Shown: positions 1-33,885 of the stretch, one piece after another
How the letters are laid out: each line of letters begins with the position of its first letter
Numbering within the stretch: the stretch's first letter is position 1
Origin: Rebecca billardiae RCC1528
Taxonomy: Eukaryota > Protista > Haptophyta
NCBI GenBank assembly: GCA_965240325.2
Contig: OZ251244.1
Coordinates: forward strand, 372,001 to 436,000
DNA length: 64,000 nt
Reading direction: 5' to 3'
The notes under the pieces: model-generated
What the model saw: only the letters and a program-made list of their open reading frames with translations
Database searches by the model: none
What the model was told of the DNA's origin: nothing
Made by a program: the position numbers and the translations under genes

Positions 1-834
1 CAGATAGCGCTGGGCGAGGTCGATTGGTGCGTCAGATATTCGGCAACGACCAGCCCCGCTCGTGTGCCGCCGCTCGTGCTACTCTTGACGACCACCTCTG
101 GCTCGGTCGCGCGCACGAGGCTGCTCGCGGGCCCAATCGTGCCGTGTACCGTCAAGCTGTACCGTGCGCAGCGAGGCGCACTCAGACGTCCGCATGGGCT
201 CGCATGCGAGGGCCCGGCAGTGCGACGCGTCGATGGAGCATGCTCCGGATACGCTTCGGCGCACTTTCCGACGCGCACGAGCCGCTCGAAGGCGCGGAAG
301 GGCGCCCAAACGGGGCAACCGCCATTTTGCGCCACTTCGGCCCGGATGGCGGTCAAGGGAAATTGCTGGTGCGCTATCCTCAGAAAAGTTTAATCATATA
401 TATACGCGTCGTGAATGATTAAGTGCCGTGTGACCGCGCCGACCGCGAGAGTTCGGATGCCCGACACGGATGGTACGGTAGGACCGCGTGTACTCAGTAC
501 TGCCACGGCTGGCAATACCGATTACCGCGTGGCTCAGATCGGGAATTAATAGCGTAACCGTATGATACTTCTGTCCTGGGACTCACTGTCGTCATACCGC
601 GCGCGGACCGGGTCTCACGGGTCTGAGGCCCGTGCGCCAAGCCGCCTCCGAGCCGAGCCGGAGCCGTCGCCGGCGGTCACGGCTGCCGGACTCTTGGCCC
701 GCCCGGGACTCTGCTCCGGGTAGCTCACTGCAGCGTGCCAATCAAGCGGCGGCGGATTCACATTCGTGGTCATGTCCGCCAGCATATCGTAGTCGTCGCT
801 GCTTTCACTTTCGGTGGCTGCTATGCAAGTAGAC

Positions 835-1462
835 TTACTCAAGCACGAAGGTCACCTTGTTCATGAAGCCGGAAATGTCGCCATCTACTCCGTAAACGGA
901 CGCGTTGCCCGAGTTGACGACGGCCTTGTTGAAGCCGATGAACGGATTGTCTGTGGTGAGGGAGTAGTTCTCGCCGGCGTCCTGTAACGGACGCGCGCGC
1001 CGATGCGCATGCATTGCCAGCACTCAGCGATGACACCGTGAGCGCACGCACGCGGTGCTTGAACACACGCAAATGCGCGCGGGGGAGACGCGCGCGTACG
1101 GATGCATACGACACCGAGCAAGCCGCCGATCCGCCCATGCCCGATCGGACAGAATACTGGCCCCACGCAGTCGAAGACCCAACGCCTGCGAGGCTTGGTG
1201 GCGCCGCGGACGCGAAATGCCCAGCAGCGCAGCTTGTTCCCGTCAGCGTGACAGCGTGCGAACTCTTGTTGACGATGTTGACATCCGTGCCACGGTCGCC
1301 GAGCGGTCCGCCGTCAGACGACACCCAGTAGCCAACGGCGAACGCGGCGAGTGGAACGGCGATTTTGGCGGCGAGGGAGGTACCGCCCGCCACTGCGGGT
1401 GGTATTGGGGCACCGTCGGCCCCGATCTCGTAGAAGACACCGACCGGCGGCTCCCAGGCCAT
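835..1462 (-). CDS. Small secreted or membrane-anchored protein, aegerolysin/Cry34-like beta-sandwich (paralogue A). Exons 1462-1100 and 981-835
   Basis: A phase-0 GT..AG intron (1099-982) joins ...CSVSYAS to DAGENYSLTTDNPFIGFNK...VLE*. Hydrophobic N-terminal segment. Similar to the gene at 1836-2428. Confidence 0.6.
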
Positions 1463-1835
1463 TGTCGTGAGTGGTTGGTTGTCGCTCCAAGCTACCGCGG
1501 AGATCGCGCAAGGTAGTCACGGCTTGATGAGTTGAGAATGTACATACACATATGGGTAGTCGCGCCACGTCTGGTCTAGTACGTACTCAGAAACCGGGAC
1601 CTTGGACCGGTACTTGAGCGACCAATCATGATATTCATCCATGATCGTCGTGATCATGATTGGAGGATCAAAATATTCGTCAATGCAACAGCGCCAATAC
1701 TTCACTGTAGCTGGGTGAAGGGATGAAGCCAGCTGTAAAGTCATCAGTGAACGAACCCTTCCAACCGGAAGCCGGAACGACGACCCTGCAACTTCCAGCC
1801 GGCCTGCTCTCGCGCACAATTGCACGTACTCGCAC

Positions 1836-2428
1836 ATGCCCGTTCTCGTGACCTTGGGCGGCATCGCCCTCGGCGCGGGCATCGGCGGGGCTTGGCTGAC
1901 GACGAGGGGTGGTCCCCTCGGGATGTTTGGCGGCCGCGGGACCAACATTCTCGTCGCCAACAACACGGGCGAGGACATCACGTTTGACCAAGGCTCTGCG
2001 GCCTGCGAGTGGGGGCGCTACGACCCTGCCGCGCCCACCACTCCCCTACCAGGGAAGGCAGAAGACGGCACCATGTCCTGGTACAAGTTTGGCACGGACA
2101 GCAACGGCGCCTCCGCGTCCTGTGGTGGCAAGTTCGTGTCTTCGGTACGTTGCATCAATCACCGGCTCACCGCTTGCGCGAATGCTGTGCGCTATAGTGC
2201 GCAAACGCGTGCTGACATGATGGCTGCTGTGCTCGCCGCGTCCGTGTTGCGGATGGCGAATAGGGTGGCACGGAGTACTCGTTCTACTCGTACAACCCCT
2301 ACGTGGGTAACAACCACGTGAACCACAGTCCCAACGTGTCGGTCTTTGACGCTTTGGGTCACCCCGAAGGCTCTGAGCAGTATGACATCGGTGGATTCGT
2401 GAACGTGGTTCAGCTCCGACTCGACTAA
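1836..2428 (+). CDS. Small secreted or membrane-anchored protein, aegerolysin/Cry34-like beta-sandwich (paralogue B). Exons 1836-2144 and 2264-2428
   Basis: A phase-0 GT..AG intron (2145-2263) joins ...CGGKFVSS to GGTEYSFYSYNPYVGNNH...LRLD*. Shares GGPLG..RGT, NP(F/Y)xGxN and DIxGFxN with paralogue A. Confidence 0.6.
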
Positions 2429-4238
2429 GTTCGGTCTAGCAGTGGAGACGACAGTCATCTCCACTTGCTGCGGCGGCGTGCTCGAGGAGCCGTTGGCCGG
2501 CCAAGTCCCTCTGGCCCGAGTCCCGCGACCGCGGCGCGGACCCGCGCCCAAGGCTGGGCGTGTGTGACGCGTCATGCCACGTGACGTCACGTCATGACGT
2601 CATGACGTGACGCGAGGAATGGCGTAACGTGACGCCCGGACAGCGCTCTGCCCACGCCTGGCACACCCGGACTCACAGTAGTGCCACAGGCGTCAGGCGG
2701 CTGCGCGCGCGCGCGCGGGCGCGCGGCGCCGCCGTCGGCCCGGCCGCCGCGGTGCTCGGGGCGGCGGTGCAGCCCTGGCCCCAACTCCAGCTCCACTGCC
2801 ACATGGGTGCGGGAGCGGGAGCCCTCGCCTTTGGGCGACGAGCCCACCTCCTCTGTGCGGTCTGGCCAGCAGCCGGAACCCGGCGCACTCCCGCCTACGG
2901 GAAGGGACTACTGTACCCCTGAAACGTCACCAGTGACTCATCATTTATTGCGTTATGAACTATCACCAGCGCCAATTACAAGAATACATACGTAACGCGG
3001 ACGAAACGGTACCCGCCAAAAGACGTGTTGCTATGACGCGTGAATTACGCGCGTAAAACGCGTGCTGACGTCATGACGTGACGCGCTGGAAACTGGGCGT
3101 ACGGTCATGACGCGTCATAGGCCAGACATATATAGCCCACGCCTGCCCGCGCCGTCCTGCGCGCGCCGGGGCCGCGCGGGACCCGCGGTGGCTACCGTAC
3201 GGCCGAGCAGTCTCAGCACTCACTGCTGCACAACTCGACAGTATCTATATATGGGCCGGCGGGGCCGCCGTCGGTGTCGCGCCCGGGGGCCTGAGCCCTG
3301 ACCGGTTACCGCGGGGTTCCTGCTGCCACCAGTTAGAGTTGGCGGGCCGCTATATACTATATATAATAATATACTGAGTACTCAGATGGCCAGTGACACG
3401 GGCTCAACAGTGACACCGGGTCCGGGGCTGACATCAGATATATTATAACCGCGTATTATTATAATATGAATCGCAGAATTCGGCATCAGCAAATCCGTGA
3501 CAACGGATGCCACAATCACCCGGTCACGGTCCGGCCGCCGTACCGTAGTCCGCGCGTACAGTACGGCCGATACCGAGCAGAGAGTACTGCGTGCGATGAA
3601 GGATGGCGCGGCCGAACCTGCGTCCTGCCACTGCGTGAGCCTTACGCACGTTTAAATAAAACTCAACTGATAAATATAATGATCTCGCCTGCCTGAGCTG
3701 TGTGCGTCTTAGTAAACTGTACCGCGACTGGCAGTTACCGGGATTCTGAGTGAGCAGAGTGCGGCCCGGAAGTCCGCGTGTGAATGAAGTGAGAGTTCCG
3801 GGCGCCGACCCGGACACCGCGTATCCGGTCAAGCCGAGCCGCTGGCGCGGAAGCCTGACGTCCGTGAGTGACTGATTGTGCCGGCCGGGCGGTTCGTCAT
3901 CGCAGACCGCATATTCAGTCCGCGTGACTTGACGTGACTTCGGGAGCCCAGTTACCTGGCGGCTCAGATATAGATATACTATAGATAGACCGGATGAGGC
4001 GCCGGCCGGGCGCCGGCCGCCCGGCGCGGGCCGGCGGCGTCGCCGCGCATGGCGGCATCGCCCCGCGGACACGAGTCACGGTGACTCGCGCGCCGGCAGG
4101 CCCGCAAGGGCAACGCCGGCTGCATCCGGGCCACCGCGGCGGCCGCCGGGCGCTCGGGAGCCGCGCTGGACCGGTATAGTCCGTCACTCCGTCACTCTCA
4201 GAGCAGTGTCTCGGCTGCTGGTTTCTTTTATAAATAAA

Positions 4239-4249
4239 GAGAGAGCGAG

Positions 4250-4289
<40 letters not shown>

Positions 4290-4334
4290 CGAGAGAGAGA
4301 GTAAGAGAGAGCTGAGAGAGAGATCGAGAGAGAG

Positions 4335-23714: not shown

Positions 23715-25358
23715 CTATGATGCTGACGACGCCGACGAAGCGTAGTCGTCGTAGCAGCAGTCATCGCGAGTCGTTGTCCGTGAGATGGGCGGGCTGCTGA
23801 GCGAGCCGTTGCTCAACAACAAGTCGCGCAGGTGGACAGCGTGCGGCAGCACGTGCTCGACCCAAACGTCCACCAGCGCGCGCCCGCCACAGTCTGACGC
23901 ACCACCGCCGCCCGCGGCGGCGGCGGCACCACCGCCCGGCGACGCGCCGTCGCGCTCGCGCGCCGTCCGCGCGCCCCGGCGCAGCCGCCCCAGCCGCGCC
24001 GAGCGCGCGAGCTGGTAGCCGATGGTGAGCAACTGCGCGACGCGCGCGCGCGCGGCGCGAGGCCACAGGTGGTGGCGCTCGCGCGACCATGGCCTCGAGG
24101 CGGCGAGCACGACGGCCGCGGTGGCGTGCGCCTGCGTGCCGCGCGCGCTTGTGGCGTACAGCGCGCCCGCGATGCTCGCGGGCGTGGGCGCGCCCGGCGC
24201 GCCGTCGCCCGCATGCACATCCGCCCCGGTCCGCACGATTTCGTCAATCGCCTCCGCCTCGGTCAGCGCCGCGAGGTGGTGGAGGGGCGTGGTCCAGCGC
24301 GCGGTGGCGCGGAGCCACGCGCCCACCGCCTCGGCCCACGCGGGCCGCGCCTCCTCCACCACCGCCGCGAGCTCCTCGCGCCCGAGCTCGCCGAGCAGCG
24401 TGCGGTGGTTGAACCGACAGCCGCCCGGCGGGAGCGCACACGCCGCGCCGTGCGCGCCGAGCAGAGACAGCAGCGCGATGCGCTCGTCAGCGCGCGCGGC
24501 CGAGCCGGCGCCGAGGTAGGCCGCCATGGCGAGCACGCCGCCGGCGCCCGCCGCCGCGGTGAAGAGCGGCGGCGCGAGCCCGTCGTGCGAGAAGTCGACC
24601 GCCGCGCGCGCGCGCAGCAGCAGCCGCGCGCACTCGACCGCGGCGCTCGCGCACGCCATCTGAAGCGGGGTGGCGCGCATGCGCTCCATCGGGCGGTTCA
24701 CGTCCGCGCCCGCGTCGACGAGCAGCCGGACGGATGCGGCGTCGCCGCGGCGGCACGCGCTGAGCAGATACTTCTCGAGCTCGCCGTCGCCCCACTCCTC
24801 GGCGGAGGGCGGCTGCGCACCGGCTCTGAGCAGCAGCGCCGCGCACTGGCCGTGGGACCGATCGAGCGCGGCGCGGAGCGGCGTGATCACGTCCGCGGCC
24901 ACCGGGTCGTACGCGCCGACGTCGACGTACGCGCCGGCGCGGATGAGGAGCTCGACGCTGTTCGCGCTGCCTCGGCGGCACGCGATGTGCAGCGGCGTGA
25001 GGCTGCCCGCGCCCGCGGCGTTCACGTCCGCTCTCGCGTTGATGAGCAATCGCGACGCTCGCACGTGCCCGTTCGCGCACGTGTGCGCGAGCGGGCGATG
25101 GCCGCACTTGGTGTGGACGGCGTTGACGCCCGCGCCCGCGTCAATGAGCAGCATCATGCACGCCTCGCGGCCCTTCACCAGCGCGCAGAAGAGTGCGTCC
25201 GACACCTCAGCCGCCGTGTGCGCGCGCGACGCGAGGAGCGCAGCGACCGCGTGGGCATCGCCCGCCTCGCAGGCGGCGGCGAGCTTCTTCGGCGCGGCTC
25301 GCGGCGCGGCTGGCGTGGTCGCGCTGCGGCTCGGCCAGCACCGCGCGCCGGAAAGCAT
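23715..25358 (-). CDS. Ankyrin-repeat protein
   Basis: Repeats TPLHIAC, TPLRAAL, TPLQMAC and LLxxGAxVN. C-terminal WTTPLHHL...GADVHA...PWSxERHHLWP module. Confidence 0.85.
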   Translation of the reverse strand: MLSGARCWPSRSATTPAAPRAAPKKLAAACEAGDAHAVAALLASRAHTAAEVSDALFCALVKGREACMMLLIDAGAGVNAVHTKCGHRPLAHTCANGHVRASRLLINARADVNAAGAGSLTPLHIACRRGSANSVELLIRAGAYVDVGAYDPVAADVITPLRAALDRSHGQCAALLLRAGAQPPSAEEWGDGELEKYLLSACRRGDAASVRLLVDAGADVNRPMERMRATPLQMACASAAVECARLLLRARAAVDFSHDGLAPPLFTAAAGAGGVLAMAAYLGAGSAARADERIALLSLLGAHGAACALPPGGCRFNHRTLLGELGREELAAVVEEARPAWAEAVGAWLRATARWTTPLHHLAALTEAEAIDEIVRTGADVHAGDGAPGAPTPASIAGALYATSARGTQAHATAAVVLAASRPWSRERHHLWPRAARARVAQLLTIGYQLARSARLGRLRRGARTARERDGASPGGGAAAAAGGGGASDCGGRALVDVWVEHVLPHAVHLRDLLLSNGSLSSPPISRTTTRDDCCYDDYASSASSAS

Positions 25359-25650: not shown

Positions 25651-28600
25651 TCACTTGCTGGCCGGCGCAGCCGCCGCAGCTGCGGGCGAGGCGCGCGGCG
25701 GCGGGGCGAACTCTCGGACCGCGGTCGTCTCACCGTACGTCATCTCGAGCACGAGCCTGAGGTCGTCGCCCGACCCGCGCACGTATCGTCGCCTGCGCAG
25801 GCAGTGGCCGCGGCAGTGCAGCGGCGCGGGCAGCGCGTCAGGTTGCGCGCACGCATGCGCACTCTTCGCGACGCACGGGAGCGCGTGGGCAGCCAGGAGG
25901 CGCGCGCAAGCGCACATGATGAGCGGCTCGAGCGCCTTCTTTGCCGCCTCGTCGGCGGGCGAGACGCTCGTGATGAGCGCGCCTCCCTCATAGTAGGTGC
26001 GCTTGCGCACGCGCACGCCCTCGAGCAGCTCCTCCGCGTCGCCTGCGTGCGCCAATGCGTCGCGCGGCACACACCGCAGCGTGGGCGCCGCGTGAGCCGG
26101 CGCGCCCGGCGTGGTGCGCATGGCGCGGCGCGGCCGCACGGCGGTGCGCGGCGCGCGTCGAGCTGGCTCGCGGCGCGCACCCTCGACGACCAGCTCGACC
26201 TGAGGCGTGAGCGGGTTGGCTGAGCCGCGCGTCTCGACGCGCCAGCCGGTCTCGCCGTACGGCCGCCACGTCTGCTCGGGCTTGGTCTGCAGCGCCGCGC
26301 GCCGCTTGGCCCAGCTCACACCCATCGCCGCGAGGTACTCGTCAAAGTTGGACGAGCCGACTAGCACCCACACGCCCGCAAAGTCTGCGCGCGCGTCCGC
26401 GCCGCCGAGTGCGCGCTCGCGCTCCGCGCGGCTTCGCGTGTACACCCGCCCGGTCTTCGGAGTGGGCGAGCCCTGGGGGTCCGGCGTCTTGGGCTCCGCC
26501 AGGTCCGTGACGGGCAGCGACGCCGCCGCGCCCGCGCTGCCGCCACCAAACGCCTTGTCGAGCTCGATCTCCCTCTCCGACTTGCGGCGCACGTACTCGC
26601 GCCCAGTCTTTGGCGTGCGCCCGCCCTTGGGGTCCGGGACCTTGGGCACCTCCAGGTCCGAGACGGGCAGCGACGCCGCCTCTTTGCGCTCGCGCTCCGC
26701 GCGGCTTCGCGTATACTCGCGCCCAGTCTTTGGCGTGCGCCCGCCCTTGGGGTCCGGGGACTTGGGCACCGCCAGGTCCGTGACGGGCAGCGACGCCGCC
26801 GCGCCCGCGCCGCCACCGCCAAACGCCGCGTCGTGCTCGGTCTCCCTCTCCGACTTGCGGCGCACGTACTCGCGCCCGGTCTTTGGGGTGCGCCCGCCCT
26901 TGGGGTCCGGGACCTTGGGCACCTCCAGGTCCGAGACGGGCAGCGACGCCGCCTCTTTGCGCTCGCGCTCCGCGCGGCTTCGCGTGTACTCGCGCCCAGT
27001 CTTTGGCGTGCGCCCGCCCTTGGGGTCCGGGACCTTGGGCACCTCGAGGTCCGAGACGGGCAGCGACGCCGCCGCCGCGTGCGCACCGCCCGGCCCGGGC
27101 GACGGGGGCACACTCTCCGAGCCGTCGGCGATCGAGGGCAGCGACTCGCGAGACACCGTCCCGGTGTGCGTCCGAGACTTGAGCGGCGGGCTGTGCGCGC
27201 CCGGCGCGACCGAGCCGACGCCGGCGTCGTCTGTGATGGCGAGCGGCGCGGCCGCAGCGGCGGCGCCCGCGCCCGCGCCGTGCGTCGGGGCGGGCCCAGC
27301 GTACCGGTGGAAGATGCGCGTGCAGCTGTGCACGCGAGAATCGATCTCGGCGTCTATCTGCACCACGAGCTCGCTCGCGCCGTCTGCGCCGCGCTGCACC
27401 GTGCGGCTCAGCGTGAGGTCGGACGCAAGAAGCCCGTGCGCCGACGCGTCGGGCACGTGCGCGCGCGTGACGAGCGCGCCCTTCTCCCAGCCGCTGCGCT
27501 TCGTCAGGTGCACGCCGTCCACCTCGTCGCTCAGCGTCCGGTCTGGCCGCGGCGGCGGCGGCGGCGGCGGCCGCACGCGTGGCGGGCGCGGGCTCGTGAG
27601 CGCGGCGCGGGCGGCGGCGCAGTGCTCTGCCGGCCTGCGGCGCGCGCCGCGTATCGTCCGCGCTCGCGGGCCTCGCCTGGCGCGCGCGCCGCGCACGCAC
27701 CGACGGCAAGGTGCTCCGTCTTGGGCCCGTGCGGCGTGTCGACTGTGAACGTCCACTCGCCCGACGGCAGCCGCTCCCAAGCCTGCACCGAGCGGTGCGA
27801 GGCGGCGAGCTTGCGCTTGAGCGGGCCGACGCCGAGCGCGCGGAGAAACTCGTCCTGCCCGCGCGAGCTGCTCAGCTGCCAGCTGCCCCGGAAGTCGCCC
27901 GCGCCGCCGCCGTCCGAGCCGTCCGCGCCCGTCGGCCCGGCAGTGGACTTGCGCGACGAGAGCTGCAGCGTCGGCAGCGAGGCGACGCCTCTGAACGCGT
28001 CGCTCGCCTTGTGTCGCTCCACCTCCGAGGGCGTCATGATGTGCACGAGCACCTGCGCCGATGCGCGGGAGGCGCACGGCGCGCGCGCAGAGGGCGCGGT
28101 CGCAGAGGCGGCCCGGTGAGCGCGGCAGCCGCAGGGCGCTGTGTGCGCGCGGCGCTCGCGCGAGCCGAGCGCACACCTCGCGCCTCAGCAGCAACTCGCC
28201 GCCGTGCCCGACGACCGCGAATTGATTGGAGAGCTCGCGGCGCCGCTGCCCGAGCGCCTCCGCCCGCTGCTGTCCGAACGAGCCCGCCCCGCCCGCGCCC
28301 GCGCCGCCGCGCGCCGACTCCTCCTCCGCCAGCCCGCCCTCCAGCGCCAGCATGCGCTCGACCAAGTCCTGCCGGACGCGCTCGGCGCGCCGCAGGCTGA
28401 GCTCTTCGTTGAACGCGCGCGGCTCGCGGTTCGCCGTGTGCCCCTCGAGCGAGATGAAGAGCGGCTCGGCGCGGCGGCTCGCGAGCACGCGGTTGCACGC
28501 GCTCAGCGTCGCCGCGAGCTGCTCGAGCACCGGCGCCTCCGCCACCGCGTCGACGTACTCCGCCTCGTCGCCTGCGGGTCAGGGTCAGGGTAGGGTTGGG

Positions 28601-31600
28601 GGTGAACAGGGGTGGGGAGGCGCGGCAGGGTGTGGGCTCGGTGCGCGCGCGCGCTCGCCGAGGCGCGCGTGGGGCGCCCTTGCCACAGCACAGCCGCGCT
28701 GCGCGCGCACACAGCCGCGCGCGCGCGCGCGTGCGCGCGCCTTTGAACTCGAACTGGCGCTTGAGCCCGACAGAGAGCGCGCCCAGCTGCAGCTGCACGA
28801 GCGGCGTGCTGCCGCCCAGCTCCTCCTCTGCACACCGGCGTGGGCGCGCGCGCGGGGGCGCGCGGGGTGCTCAGTGCGGCGCGGCGGCACGCGCTCCGCT
28901 CCGGCGCGCGGCTGGCCGCGCGCGCCACGGCTGGCGGCCCAGCACCGCTGCACGCGGCTGGCTTCAAAGCCCGCGCGTGCGCGCTGCGCCGCACCGCGCC
29001 GCGCGCGCCGCGCCCAGCCCGCGCCCAGCCCGCACCCAGCCCGCGCGGCGCGCGCCCATCGCCGTACCGATCTCTCGCTGCACCGTCGCCAAGTGCTGCG
29101 CGTGCATAGAGCGCTCAGCCTCGAGCGCGCGCGCTCGCTCCTCCTCCGCCCTCTCCGCGGCCGCGCGCGCGGCGGTGGGCGAGAGCACGCGCAGCTCGAG
29201 CGTGCCCGCCGGGCGGCCCGGCGCGCCGCGCAGCGCGCTCGCCAGCAGCCGCCGATCCGCCTCCGCGCGCCGCGTCAGCACCCCCGAGGGCGTGCGCAGC
29301 AGCAGCTCTGCAAGCTCGGCGCGCGCGCGCGCGGCGCGCGCGGCGGCGCGCGCGAGCGCCTGGGGCTCGGAGGCGTCGGCCGGGTCGGCGTGCACCTCGA
29401 CCGCGACGGTGGCCGGCTCGAGCCCGCGCTCGGCGCACGCGGCGTGCACGCAGCCGATCGCCGCCGCCGCCGCCTCGAGCGTCGCGCGCGCGGCCTCGGG
29501 CTCGGCAAAGCGCGTGCCATGCGATTCGAACACTACAGGCCGGAGCAGGCTCAGTCGGAGGCCTGATAGGTCAATCTCGACGACGTCGGCGGGGTGCTCG
29601 GCGGAGCCGGCGAGGCGCGCGTGCGCACGCAGCCGGCGGCGAGACGCCTGCTGCACGTCCCGCAGCGAGGTCGCGTAGCTCTGCTGCTCGGCGGCGAGCG
29701 CGGCCGTGTCGGCGGTCAGCCGCGCGCGCTCGGCCGCGGCCGCGCGCGCGCTCGCGGACGAGGCCGCTTGGTGCGCGCGCGCCTCGGCGGGCGTCATGAT
29801 GCGCACGTCGACGCGGCGCTCGAGGCGCACCGAGCCGCCCAGCCCCTTCACGCTCAGCCGCGCCTCCACGTCGCGCCGCGTCAGCCGGTTCGTCCCGTCG
29901 CGCAGCAGCGCGTCCTCCAGGTCCGCGGCGACGCGCGCCGCGCGCTGCTTGGAGAGCGCTTCGTTGTACTCGGCTGGCTCGCGGTTGGCGGTGTGCCCCT
30001 CGAGGGAGAGGTAGAGCGGCGAGAGGTCGTGCTCGGCGAGCAGCCCGTTGCAGCACGCCACCGCGCGCGCCAGCTGCGTCACCGTCTCGAGCCCCGCCTC
30101 GAGCGCGAGGTACTCCGCCGCGTCGCCCTCGAACTCAAAATGGCGCGTGAGAGACAAGCGCAGCGCGCCGAGCTCGGGTGCAATCAGCGGCGTCGACGCG
30201 CCGAGCCGGCGCTCGAGCTCGGGCTGCAGCGCGTCGAGGCGCCGCGCGTACGCGGCGGCCTCCTCCGCGTCCGCCCTCGGCGTCCGCGCCGCCGCGCCCT
30301 CGCCCTCGGCGTCGTGCTCGGCCGCGGCGGCCGAGCCCACGTCCTCCTCGTCCGCGCCGGCAGCGTCAATGACTTCCCCGCGCGAGACGGCGGCGCGGTG
30401 CGCGGCGGTCTCGCGCGGCGTCATGAGCACGACGCGCACCTCCTCGGACACGTCGTTCGCCGGCCCCGCCATCAACGCCACGCTCGTCCGCGGCGACGCG
30501 CGCGTCGCCATCGCGCGCATCGTCGCACCGTCCGGCGGCTGCGTTGCCCTGGAGGCGCCCACCAGAGACTCGGCCTCAGCGGGCGGCAGCGAGCGCGCCG
30601 GCGAGGCGAGGACGAGGTGGCGGACGAGCAGCGCGCGCAGCGCGGAGGCGCGGCGCCGCGCGAGCACGAGCGCGTGCCCGCCCGCCGTCTCCACCTCCTC
30701 GCCCTCCTCCGCCGCCGGCGCCACCTCCAGCCGCACCGACACAGTCCCGATCTCGGGGTGCATCTCGGCGAGGGAGATATTGAGGAGCAGGAGTGCGCGC
30801 GCCACGCTGTGCATGGTGCGCTCGGCGGCGGGCGGGTTGAGCAGCTCGGCGCGGCCGCGCACGAAGGCGGGCACGGCGGCGCGGCGCAGCCCGAGCTGCA
30901 GCGCGCCGAGCTGCGAGAGCGACACCGCGCTCTGTATCCCCTCCGCGTCGGTCTGACGGCCGACCGCGAAGCGCAGCAGCGACTGCTTCGTGCCCAGCTC
31001 GCGCCCAAAGCGCGCGCGCTCCTCGGCGGCGCGGCGCGCCTCGTCGAGCTCGAGCGTGCGGCGCACCTCCTCGTCACGCAGCCCGTGCTCGCGGTCGAAC
31101 GCCAGCCGGTCCTCCAGCGACGCGCGCAGCGCCGAGGCGAAGCTGGAGACGTCGAGCAGCGGCTCAGGCTTGGCGTCCGCGGCCGCGCCCGCCGCCGTCG
31201 GCCCCGGCTGCACGACGGCGGCGGTGCGCCCGAGCGCGGCGAAGAGCGCGTCGGTGCGCGAGGCGAGCGACTCGCCGCCCACGCGCGCGAGCGCGCGGCG
31301 CACGTCCGTCGCCGGCAGCCGCCCGTCCCGGTCCTCGTCGTACATGGAAAAGGCGTGCTGCACCGACGTCTCGAGCGACATGCCGGTCGCGCACATGCGG
31401 AGGTAGATCTGGAGGAAGTCGGCGCGGGAGAGCTTGATCGAGCGGAGCACGCGCGGGTCCACCAGGTCGACGAGCTCCTCCTCGCTCACGGTGAAGCCGC
31501 ACACCGAGAGCGCGCTCGGCAGCTCGGCCGTGTGCAGCACGCCCTGCTTCTCGATCACCTGCCACGCAGCCTCGAACTCGGCCTCGAGCTCGGGCGGCAT

Positions 31601-31690
31601 CGTGCCGTCGGGGAGGAGCTCGTCGTACGGCGCGATCGGCCCGCGCGCGAGCGGGCGCTGCGACCGCGACGAGCCGGTGCCGCGGCGCAT
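25651..31690 (-). CDS. About 1695-aa multidomain protein: calmodulin-like EF-hand region, 4 OmpA-C-like repeats, FABP-like domain, Pro/Lys repeat linker, second FABP-like domain. Exons 31690-29068, 28827-28741, 28571-28177, 28052-27701, 27542-26181, 26042-25916, 25792-25651
   Basis: The exons sum to 5088 nt with consistent phases. Motifs: FSMYDEDRDGRL; SLEGHTAN....(Y/F)NE.LS..RA.RV twice; FRGSWQL..SRGQDEFLRALGV...CTRIF; FAGVWVL..SSNFDEYLAAMGV. Confidence 0.75.
26413..27072 (-). repeat. Five coding tandem repeats (120/153 bp alternating), consensus SLPVSDLEVPKVPDPKGGRTPKTGREY
   Basis: Directly visible A-B-A-B-A arrangement within exon 5. Confidence 0.9.
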
Positions 31691-32135: not shown

Positions 32136-33885
32136 ATGATGCGGGGGGGCTCGCCCGGCGAGCCCACGGACGGCCCGTCGCCACCGCCCGGGCCGTTGCG
32201 GCGGGACAGCGAGCCGCCGCGCCGCCCGCCACTCCCGCCGGCGATCCGTCCGCCCGCCAGAGGCCCGGAGGCCAACGGCAGCCACGCGGTGCCTTTGGGC
32301 GTGCGCGCGCTCTCGCATCCGGAGTCGCCTGTCATCTCGCCCGAGGTGCTGCGGGCAGCGCAGCAGCCGCTCAACGGGCCGCACCTGACGATCACGGCGC
32401 CACTCTCGCAGCTGCAGCTCAACCGCTCGGGCTCCGCCTCGCCCTCCGCGACGCTCCGCCCACCCGGCTTCGACGAATCCCCGCGCACGAGCGTCGCGTC
32501 GGGCTCGCAAGGCGGCTCGTACTATGGCGCCGACTCTCCGACGTACCGGCCGATCCAGCCGTACGACTGGGCGTCGCCAGCCGGCTCGGCCCGATCGTAC
32601 CCGCCCTCCGGCCCGCCCTCGGGCCCGCCCTCCGGCCCGCCCTCGGGCCCGCCCTCGCGCATCCCCACGCAGCGCTCCATCGAGGAGTTCACGTCAGAGC
32701 CGGGGCAGCAGTTCGCGCCGCGCTCGCCGGCGCACAGGCGACCGCCGTACGACGACGGCGGCGAGGTCGTCATAGATATCAGCCCGACGTACAACCCGTA
32801 CATCAACCACTTCGCCAGGTGCGCGCGCTGCGGCGCGTTTGTGCGCGCCCGCACCCGCCTCCTCACGCGCTCTCGGCCGCCCGCCCGCCCGCGCTGTCGC
32901 CCGCGCGCCGCCGCGCAGCCCCGCGCCAAACGACGGTCGCGTGGTGCGCTGCACCGTGGTGCGCACGCGTGGCAAGAAGAAGCAGGTCACGTACCGCCTC
33001 CTCACCGAGAGCGGCGACGAGCTGCTCACCGCCGTGCGCAAGTACGACGACTTCGCCATCGGCATGACGTCGTCAGAGAGCCTCATCGGCAGCGTCGACC
33101 GGAGCGCGGGTACGCCGGGCGGCGGCGGCAGCAGCGGCGGACATCCGGACTACAAGAAGTGGCAGAAGCAGTGCTTCTCGCTGCTGCGCTGCCCCGCCGA
33201 CGACGCCGAGTCGCGCGTCTACCTCGCGTACAACGCCGCGCACAACGGCAAGGAGCTCGCGCCGACAGGCGAGCCTCTGATGGCCCTCACGCACGGCACG
33301 CTGGTCGCGTCGATGCATCTGCCCCAGGTGAACACGATGCGCGTCGCTTTCCCCGACCCGGATGCGGGCTCGCCGCTGTGCAGCGCGAGCTACCTCACCG
33401 CGTCGCTGCACAGCATGGAGGAGGCCGAAGCCGAGGCGGCGGGCGACGTCGGCGGCTCGGGCAGCCGCGCGAGCACGCCGCCCTCCGACAGCCGGCGCGG
33501 CAGGCGGCCGCACTCGGTCGGCAACTTGCAGCAGGCGGTGGCCGGTGGGCTGGTCCTGCTCGAGAGCAGGGTACCCGTGTGGAACCAGCGGACCGAGTCG
33601 TACGTGCTCAACTTCCACGGGCGCGCGACGCTCGCCTCGTCCAAAAACCTGCAGCTCACGCCGTGGAAGCTCACGGAGACGCCGCTGCCCTCGCCGGCGC
33701 TCAGCGCGCACGACGAGGGCGAGGGCGACGGCAGCGCGTCGCGCCGCGCGCCCGGCCGCAGCGGCAACCGGATGCCCACGCTGCTGTATGGCAAGGTGGA
33801 CAAAGACACGTACAACCTCGACTACCAGTACCCGCTCTCGCCGTACCACGCGTTCCTCATCGCCGTCTCGGTCGCGGATTGGTGA
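32136..33885 (+). CDS. Tubby-like protein. Intron 32819-32918
   Basis: PAP..G.VVRC, PVWNQRTESYVLNFHGRATLASSKNLQL and YNLDYQYPLSPYHAF match the tubby C-terminal domain. Confidence 0.9.

Follow-up and report, generated by a model that had tools for sequence, protein, structure and literature searches.

What is encoded at an algal locus where sequences resembling calmodulin, the C-terminal domain of bacterial OmpA and the fatty-acid-binding proteins (FABPs) follow one another on one strand, and what might the product do? The question is raised by a 64,000-nucleotide (nt) stretch of the Rebecca billardiae RCC1528 genome (GenBank assembly GCA_965240325.2, contig OZ251244.1, forward-strand positions 372,001 to 436,000), here called the window. 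From the sequence we conclude with high confidence that positions 25651-31690 of the window hold one genuine nuclear spliced gene of this very GC-rich pavlovophyte haptophyte, and that the predicted protein joins a calmodulin-like head, four OmpA-C-like modules (R1 to R4) and two FABP domains (FABP1 and FABP2).

Gene model and coding evidence

The gene model was rebuilt from a three-frame translation of the minus strand and from reading of the sequence, independently of an earlier interpretation made from the letters alone (the sequence-only reading). That reading had proposed a single, frame-consistent gene of 7 exons and 5,088 nt. Exactly the same length was regained: the exons sum to 5,088 nt, equal to 1,695 codons plus a TGA, with 0 internal stops. 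The repeat and FABP motifs that it had quoted were likewise all found in the translated model. The gene and its parts are as follows.

25651..31690, minus strand: whole gene, 7 exons, 5,088-nt coding sequence, 1,695 aa; ortholog of Diacronema lutheri KAG8460366.1
31690-29068, 28827-28741, 28571-28177, 28052-27701, 27542-26181, 26042-25916 and 25792-25651, minus strand: exons 1-7
29068..31690, minus strand: exon 1 (aa 1-874), calmodulin-like head, R1-R3 and helical spacers
28828..29067, minus strand: intron 1, 240 nt, GT-AG, donor GTACGG
28572..28740, minus strand: intron 2, 169 nt, GC-AG, donor AAAG/GCGCGC (the slash marks the splice site)
28053..28176, minus strand: intron 3, 124 nt, GT-AG, donor GTGTGC
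27543..27700, minus strand: intron 4, 158 nt, donor GTGCGT; position and phase as in the D. lutheri intron at aa 1289
26043..26180, minus strand: intron 5, 138 nt, donor GTGCGC; position and phase as in the D. lutheri intron at aa 1571
25793..25915, minus strand: intron 6, 123 nt, donor GTGCGC; position and phase (..AT/G) as in the D. lutheri intron at aa 1614

All six introns end in the acceptor CAG; five are of the GT-AG type with a GTGCGC-like donor and one is GC-AG. The GC content at codon positions 1, 2 and 3 of the coding sequence is 0.77, 0.56 and 0.94, respectively, and this pattern of low GC2 and high GC3 recurs in each exon. The six introns (GC 0.76-0.87) display no codon periodicity. 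Because the locus lies in DNA of ∼76% GC, in which chance alone produces long open reading frames (ORFs) in every one of the six frames, ORF length alone is no proof of a gene. The same circumstance would favour the view that neighbouring genes were wrongly joined, or that a decaying pseudogene owes its long ORFs to base composition; the annotation of Pavlovales sp. CCMP2436, in which two or more models (KAJ1635222 and KAJ1635221 among them) share out the homologous locus, points in the same direction. Against this view stand the strong GC3 periodicity and the location of the domain boundaries within single exons. The final strand of R4 and the beginning of FABP1 are encoded together in exon 4; exon 5 continues through the rest of FABP1 and the linker to the beginning of FABP2. 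The splice junctions all lie within a domain or immediately before the first strand of R4.

Comparison with the D. lutheri protein argues further against a mis-joined or decaying locus. In blastp alignments, aa 867-1235 of the model matched aa 1041-1367 of KAG8460366.1 (39% identity, E 4e-55), covering junctions 1-4, and aa 1539-1678 matched aa 1505-1642 (42% identity, E 6e-29), covering junctions 5 and 6. The junctions thus restore a collinear ortholog alignment, and MAFFT placed indels at 0/6 of them (junctions 1-4 judged against KAG8460366.1 and the CCMP2436 relative P0006, junctions 5 and 6 against KAG8460366.1). Mapped on its own locus, KAG8460366.1 has five exons, the first of which is a single 3,864-nt ORF (residues 1-1288) that comprises the EF-hand head, five OmpA-like units and the first half of FABP1. 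Since this exon runs uninterrupted from the head into FABP1, the fusion in D. lutheri needs no splicing assumption. Intron positions are conserved as well: in D. lutheri, introns that fall at residues 1289, 1571 and 1614 match window introns 4, 5 and 6 and have the same GTGCGC donor. The unusual GC donor of window intron 2 is supported by a counterpart in a pavlovophyte contig (L002), where a 135-nt GT-AG intron, read through by the ORF caller, occupies the same position and codon phase. Taken together, these findings leave a mis-join or a pseudogene as a very remote prospect that is largely excluded.

At the CCMP2436 locus (L001, MU631373.1:192865-215043), collinear OmpA-like units are followed by FABP1 and FABP2 pieces over ∼16 kb. 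The locus is annotated as several models, including KAJ1635222.1 (466 aa) and KAJ1635221.1 (371 aa). N accounts for 9,200 of its 22,179 bases, and the gaps may account for the split models, which we take to be an annotation error.

Bacterial contamination was considered and rejected in view of the spliceosomal introns, a GC content equal to that of the eukaryotic neighbours and the presence of orthologs in two Pavlovales genomes. The flanking genes encode an ankyrin-repeat protein (23715-25358, minus strand; Ank_2, E 6e-32) and a Tubby-domain protein (32839-33885, plus strand; Tub, E 8e-29), ordinary eukaryotic neighbours that also speak against a bacterial origin of the locus by contamination.

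Orthologs and distribution

A phmmer search with exon 1 against 1.84 billion representative proteins yielded 19 matches with a top identity of 37%; the named ones belong to Pavlovales. The D. lutheri relative is a 1,644-aa 'hypothetical protein' (KFE25_011857, KAG8460366.1, UniRef100_A0A8J5X7U7; label P0021). The genome of this species measures 43.5 Mb and was annotated by BRAKER2 with RNA-seq data (PMC8379373). The CCMP2436 relatives KAJ1635222 and KAJ1635221 are adjacent models on one scaffold, and a relative from an IMG metagenome (P0020, 1,204 aa) carries the automatic name 'OmpA-like peptidoglycan-associated protein / Ca2+-binding EF-hand'. When the calmodulin-like head was searched against the whole 72-Mb R. 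billardiae genome (41 contigs), its one match was the window gene, which is therefore the unique ortholog of KAG8460366.1. Judged from these sequences, the predicted architecture is conserved across Pavlovales.

Literature searches found no paper on the window protein or its orthologs. The earlier statement that no described protein of this architecture was known is nevertheless too strong with regard to the databases, where the ortholog is public as hypothetical protein KAG8460366.1 and the IMG protein has its automatic OmpA-like/EF-hand name.

In the metagenomic contig that encodes P0020 (L022, JGI 3300036591, 4,561 nt), the ORF ends right after the fifth OmpA-like unit. Direct translation of positions 3694-4300 revealed degenerate FABP-like sequence past the stop, in the same frame and then in another. 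This suggests either that the FABP part was lost or that an intron or frameshift is unresolved.

Calmodulin-like head and N-terminus

The head and its single canonical loop are located as follows.

31091..31642, minus strand: calmodulin-like domain with four EF-hand positions (aa 17-200), by calmodulin match
31304..31339, minus strand: EF3 loop DEDRDGRLPATD (aa 118-129), the sole canonical loop, read from the sequence

In a phmmer search of the PDB, residues 18-129 of the head matched residues 7-120 of calmodulin (E 4.1e-6). The head aligns end to end with calmodulin-like proteins of ∼150 aa, and two EF-hand helix-loop-helix pairs were found. The fold assignment made in the sequence-only reading is therefore sound, in line with this PDB match (E 4e-6). 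The same reading had called the protein Ca2+-regulated, which finds no such backing: one of the four EF loops is canonical (DEDRDGRLPATD), its position 12 is Asp and not Glu, the acid at this position is not kept in five orthologs (Lys, Ala, Ala, Thr and Thr), and the Pfam profile EF-hand_6 scored 24.7 bits, just under its cut-off of 25. From the sequence, conserved Ca2+ regulation of the head is not supported.

The N-terminus preceding the motif APYDEL is short and hydrophilic, and five homologs other than the window protein share it. As had been noted earlier, neither a signal peptide nor a transmembrane segment is evident at this end, the conservation of which extends to four species. Plastid or secretory targeting was rejected as a candidate because an N-terminal hydrophobic segment is absent. 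Because of its short, hydrophilic and conserved N-terminus, the protein is predicted to be cytosolic.

Identity and fold of the OmpA-like repeats

The four repeats occupy the following positions.

30398..30898, minus strand: R1 (aa 265-431), degenerate; GHT motif gone, RRA Arg present
29771..30184, minus strand: R2 (aa 503-640), core LEGHTANREPAEYNEALSKQRA; Pfam OmpA 22.7 bits
29159..29578, minus strand: R3 (aa 705-844), degenerate
28011..28798, minus strand: R4 (aa ∼885-1049), core LEGHTANREPRAFNEELSLRRA; introns 2 and 3 inside; Pfam OmpA 27.4 bits

R1 to R4 begin with LGALQLGL, LGALRLSL, LSGLRLSL and LGALSVGL and end with VRVVLMTP, VDVRIMTP, LELRVLSP and VLVHIMTP, respectively; the motif LEGHTANREP...N..LS..RA is present in R2 and R4. 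A conserved helix (AY...L..VQ......LG) precedes each unit, and long helical spacers separate the modules. The number of units is four in the window protein, five in D. lutheri and five in P0020. Across its junctions, R4 is free of gaps relative to R5 of KAG8460366.1 and to P0006.

The sequence-only reading had expected four matches to the Pfam OmpA family (PF00691). R4, scanned as exon 3 alone, marginally exceeded the cut-off (27.4 versus 27.2 bits), R2 fell below it, and neither R1 nor R3 gave a match on its own. KAG8460366.1 scored 80.1 bits over 4 stretches. R1 and R3 are tied to the family by profile comparison, because hhalign detected homology with the canonical units for both the R1-type profile (99.3%, E 9.1e-21, 137 columns) and the R3-type profile (99.8%, E 3.7e-29, 139 columns). 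An alignment of 21 units, drawn from the window protein, KAG8460366.1, P0020, four other relatives and one paralog, was searched as a profile against the PDB and yielded 24 matches, OmpA-like throughout (best E 5.2e-6).

With this 21-unit alignment as input, AlphaFold2 modelled R2 at a mean predicted local distance difference test score (pLDDT) of 93.2 and a predicted template-modelling score (pTM) of 0.88. The best 50 Foldseek matches of the model in the PDB are all OmpA-like (YfiB, OmpA, Pal, OprF, MotB, TssL and ArfA; probability 1.00, TM score 0.5-0.7). In the ESM-Atlas, the ten matches listed are all PF00691 clusters (TM score 0.65-0.71, root-mean-square deviation 2.2-2.7 Å). The predicted R2 structure thus matches the OmpA-C alpha/beta fold in the comparison that the sequence-only reading had put forward as a check. 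A single-sequence model that started past strand 1 of R2 was uninformative on the fold: at a mean pLDDT of 60, its confident part was limited to the spacer helix (H114-176; pLDDT means of 10-residue blocks 69-98, at least 84 from about residue 121). Collectively, Pfam, hhalign and the R2 model agree that R1 to R4 are OmpA-C-like alpha/beta modules, a proposal of the earlier reading confirmed here by sequence comparison and, for R2, also by the predicted structure.

Peptidoglycan-binding residues and murein context

In Acinetobacter baumannii OmpA, Asp271 and Arg286 bind diaminopimelate (PMC5974059). HMMER alignments to the structure 3TD3 placed GHT-A-N...R of the window units on GHT-D271-N...R286. 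The equivalent of Arg286 is kept in 21/21 units. At the position of Asp271, R2 and R4 have Ala, whereas R1 and R3 lack an equivalent; Asp stands there in 0/21 units. A profile search of the 72-Mb genome for PF00905 (penicillin-binding-protein transpeptidase) and PF01225 (Mur ligase) gave no match; bacterial controls did match. Nor does the protein carry the features of an extracytoplasmic OmpA-like domain, namely a signal peptide, lipobox or membrane anchor near a murein sacculus.

These data bear on the suggestion, made in the sequence-only reading, that the protein could sense or handle bacterial prey material. In its fuller form this proposal holds that the modules bind bacterial peptidoglycan or muropeptides and thereby serve cytosolic pattern recognition of the wall of prey or symbionts, coupled to Ca2+ and lipid. 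The OmpA-C fold is confident, the core GHTxN..P...N..LSL.RA..V is otherwise well kept and retains the Arg that binds the diaminopimelate carboxylate in every unit examined, and in an alga that has no murein of its own a murein ligand would be foreign, all of which would suit such a role. However, the Asp271 equivalent is missing from every unit, most of the motif is gone in R1 and R3, and a protein without a signal peptide would have no access to the phagosome or to periplasm-like lumina. The apparent occurrence of an Asp-less unit inside a cyclophilin, described below, suggests in addition a general eukaryotic module. We consider murein handling improbable, and the description of the modules as a cell-wall-binding fold is not supported, given the loss of the Asp in all units, the predicted cytosolic location and the lack of transpeptidase or Mur ligase domain matches in the genome.

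The Asp-less unit in question lies elsewhere in the R. billardiae genome (L014, G000:C24:825042-828554; ORF 832-2316, plus strand), in a 494-aa protein with the core VEGHTKYD...LSQRRA. Its flanks resemble P0012, an IMG protein named cyclophilin-family isomerase (Pfam was run on the inserted unit only); the whole looks like a cyclophilin-like protein into which an OmpA-like unit has been inserted. Asp-less OmpA-like units with a leading helix also occur in P0012 itself and in the N-terminally hydrophobic proteins P0008 and P0016; one of the latter two comes from an MMETSP transcriptome.

FABP domains and linker

The C-terminal part of the protein is organized as follows.

27304..27902, minus strand: FABP1 (aa ∼1086-1232), intron 4 inside; its start shares exon 4 with the end of R4
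26413..27075, minus strand: inter-FABP tandem repeat, in frame, 273 nt, 2.4 copies, 92% identical; Pro/Lys/Arg-rich linker
25699..26385, minus strand: FABP2 (aa 1539-1680), introns 5 and 6 inside

FABP1 starts with FRGSWQLSSS..DEFLRALGV and ends with CTRIF; FABP2 starts with FAGVWVLVGSSNFDEYLAAMGV and ends with AVREF. In PDB searches, the exon-4 piece of FABP1 matched CRABP1 (E 9.7e-5) and the exon-5 piece of FABP2 matched heart FABP (E 3.5e-7), with only intracellular lipid-binding proteins (iLBPs) among the matches listed for either piece. At full length, D. lutheri FABP2 matched CRABP2 (E 3e-10) and D. lutheri FABP1 matched ReP1-NCXSQ and CRBP1 (E 2.5e-7). A family profile that included the five pieces from the window gave 227 PDB matches at E<=0.001; the best 60 of the 227 are all iLBPs, and the best one extends over positions 2-143 of 145 (E 2.6e-16).

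The equivalents of the carboxylate-binding Arg111 and Arg132 (CRABP2 numbering) are present in both FABP1 (LSRT...CTRIF) and FABP2 (MRRY...AVREF). The carboxylate-binding set pairs an Arg at beta-H/I with Arg-x-Tyr in the last strand; its Tyr is Phe in both window domains, as in squid ReP1-NCXSQ, which also ends in CTRIF. By this homology both domains are true iLBP members. The earlier assignment of two FABP-like domains thus holds on the strength of the full-length family profile; the accompanying expectation of two PF00061 matches does not. PF00061 reached at best 16.8 bits, on the N-terminal piece of FABP2 (cut-off 23), and matched no other piece, the intron-split domains having been scanned piecewise; a scan of the contiguous KAG8460366.1 gave no match at E<=1.

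The linker between the two domains consists of repeat units of the type AASLPVSDLEVPKVPDPKGGRTPKTGREY(T/V)R..., rich in S/T-P sites. The repeat is absent from D. lutheri and is a recent, species-specific expansion.

FABP-like domains are not confined to the window gene: at least 14 matches were found at six loci of the genome. One of these (L004, G000:C11:2671140-2674478; ORF 13-2025, plus strand) encodes a 670-aa product with a Sulfotransfer_2 domain (PF03567, E 4.9e-16); the ORF runs out two thirds of the way into an FABP-like domain, the remainder of which (match at C11:2673089-2673202) follows past an apparent intron. A second (L007, G000:C7:1197225-1200638; ORF 1483-2649, minus strand) encodes, in a single exon, a protein of 388 aa that has a coiled coil at its N-terminus, a long low-complexity stretch rich in Pro and Gln and, at its C-terminus, a complete FABP-like domain that is 44% identical to D. 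lutheri FABP2 and ends in CSRIFERQRAAK. On contig 19 (G000:C19:1664145-1665922, plus strand; L005, L008 and L009), three FABP-like domains are arranged in tandem, each split by introns.

Proposed function

Judged from the features described above, the protein is most likely a tethered lipid chaperone or scaffold of the cytosol. Its two FABP barrels would use the Arg...Arg-x-Phe set to bind lipids with a carboxylate group, of which free long-chain fatty acids are the most plausible. For the OmpA-like modules a role as peptidoglycan anchors is improbable, because the diaminopimelate-binding Asp is lost in every copy and the host makes no murein; more likely they dock on, or space the protein along, another and possibly anionic ligand or partner proteins, and would in this way keep the lipid carriers at one fixed place in the cell. 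The calmodulin-like head probably mediates contacts with other proteins rather than acting as a conserved Ca2+ switch. We put this mechanism forward tentatively when it is considered by itself. The favoured statement as a whole, comprising the gene, its domains and the mechanism of a tethered lipid chaperone or scaffold, we hold with moderate confidence.

Several points weigh against it. The function of any member of the family is deduced from domain content, and the ten-stranded barrel with its helix-turn-helix lid is predicted by aligning the domains over their full length with iLBPs of known structure. R1 and R3 have degenerated strongly. The residue directly after the missing Asp, which is Asn in the GHTAN of the window protein and Asp in the GHTAD of some units, might make up for part of its contribution to ligand binding. 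In L022 the ORF ends before the degenerate FABP-like remnants, and the FABP part can accordingly be dispensable. We list here also the prediction of a two-copy R2 complex, which scored 0.01 and weighs neither way on self-association.

The long and confident helical spacers between the modules might alternatively indicate a purely structural or cytoskeletal role, for example in the flagellar or haptonemal apparatus, in which the folds would act as rigid blocks without a small-molecule ligand. The tolerance of degenerate repeats, the variable repetitive linker and the differing count of OmpA-like units (4 in the window protein, 5 in D. lutheri) fit such a role. Yet the Arg pair that binds lipid carboxylates is present in both FABPs of both species and in the examined paralogs, and the OmpA-core Arg is constrained together with its surrounding motif; such a pattern is seen more typically at ligand sites. 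We regard a purely structural role as a fair rival but an unlikely one, and we retain the tethered lipid chaperone or scaffold as the working proposal.

The most far-reaching possibility, which we regard as a long shot, is that a bacterial murein-binding fold, domesticated by pavlovophyte algae and lacking the Asp, acts as a cytosolic sensor of a non-murein ligand, or of a muropeptide bound in a new mode, and is physically coupled to two fatty-acid carriers. If that were so, the protein would represent a new link of a bacterial-type recognition fold to lipid handling or signalling in eukaryotes, and the iLBPs would be older or more mobile than the view of them as an animal invention allows.

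Significance

Each of the three domain families is well known, and it is their setting that is unusual. What is new is the architecture and its context rather than a kind of system; the sequence of the ortholog is already public, its function uncharacterised. According to the FABP literature, iLBPs arose after animals had split from fungi and plants (PMC3796463). The true iLBP domains found here in a haptophyte would imply an origin older than this view or a horizontal transfer. The haptophyte FABP family spans at least six loci and includes fusions to a sulfotransferase, a coiled-coil protein and the OmpA-like protein. The OmpA fold, clearly constrained in a predicted cytosolic protein of an alga without murein and stripped of exactly one of its two ligand residues, also raises the question of an alternative ligand.

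Pavlovales are model algae for the biosynthesis of eicosapentaenoic and docosahexaenoic acid lipids (PMC8379373). In such organisms a conserved large protein with two predicted fatty-acid-binding barrels constitutes a concrete candidate for intracellular fatty-acid trafficking.

Comparison with known systems

The closest counterpart is KAG8460366.1, which shares with the window protein the order of calmodulin-like head, tandem OmpA-like units and two FABP domains, three intron positions and a short N-terminus without a signal peptide; the heads are 55% identical in their aligned core (model aa 19-130). The D. lutheri protein differs in having five OmpA-like units instead of four and one additional intron in FABP1, and the 273-nt tandem repeat is missing from its linker. 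Its R5, the final OmpA-like unit and the one that corresponds to window R4, is intronless, whereas window R4 contains introns, and its EF3 loop lacks the acid at position 12 that the window EF3 loop has. KAG8460366.1 is itself uncharacterised.

The bacterial OmpA-C domains (PF00691), such as those of A. baumannii OmpA (3TD3), YfiB, Pal and MotB, have the same alpha/beta fold as that predicted for the window modules and share with them the core GHT-x-N...N..LS..RA, including the Arg286 equivalent. Unlike these domains, the window modules lack the Asp271 equivalent, are predicted to be cytosolic, occur in tandem with a conserved leading helix per unit, and belong to a eukaryotic protein encoded by a gene with introns in a host genome that gave no match to the transpeptidase or Mur ligase domains of murein synthesis.

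The animal iLBPs (FABP, CRABP and CRBP, and squid ReP1-NCXSQ, 3PP6) are homologous to the window domains over their full length and share the N-terminal F-x-G-x-W and helix-turn-helix signature as well as the two carboxylate-binding Arg residues; the C-T-R-I-F end of ReP1-NCXSQ is identical. In contrast to these stand-alone proteins of ∼15 kDa, the window FABPs are C-terminal modules of a large haptophyte protein and score under the PF00061 cut-off.

Calmodulin, finally, is collinear with the window head over ∼115 residues (E 4e-6), and the third EF loop of the head is canonical. The head departs from calmodulin in its EF1, EF2 and EF4, which are degenerate or contain deletions, and in its fusion to a tail of 1,500 aa.

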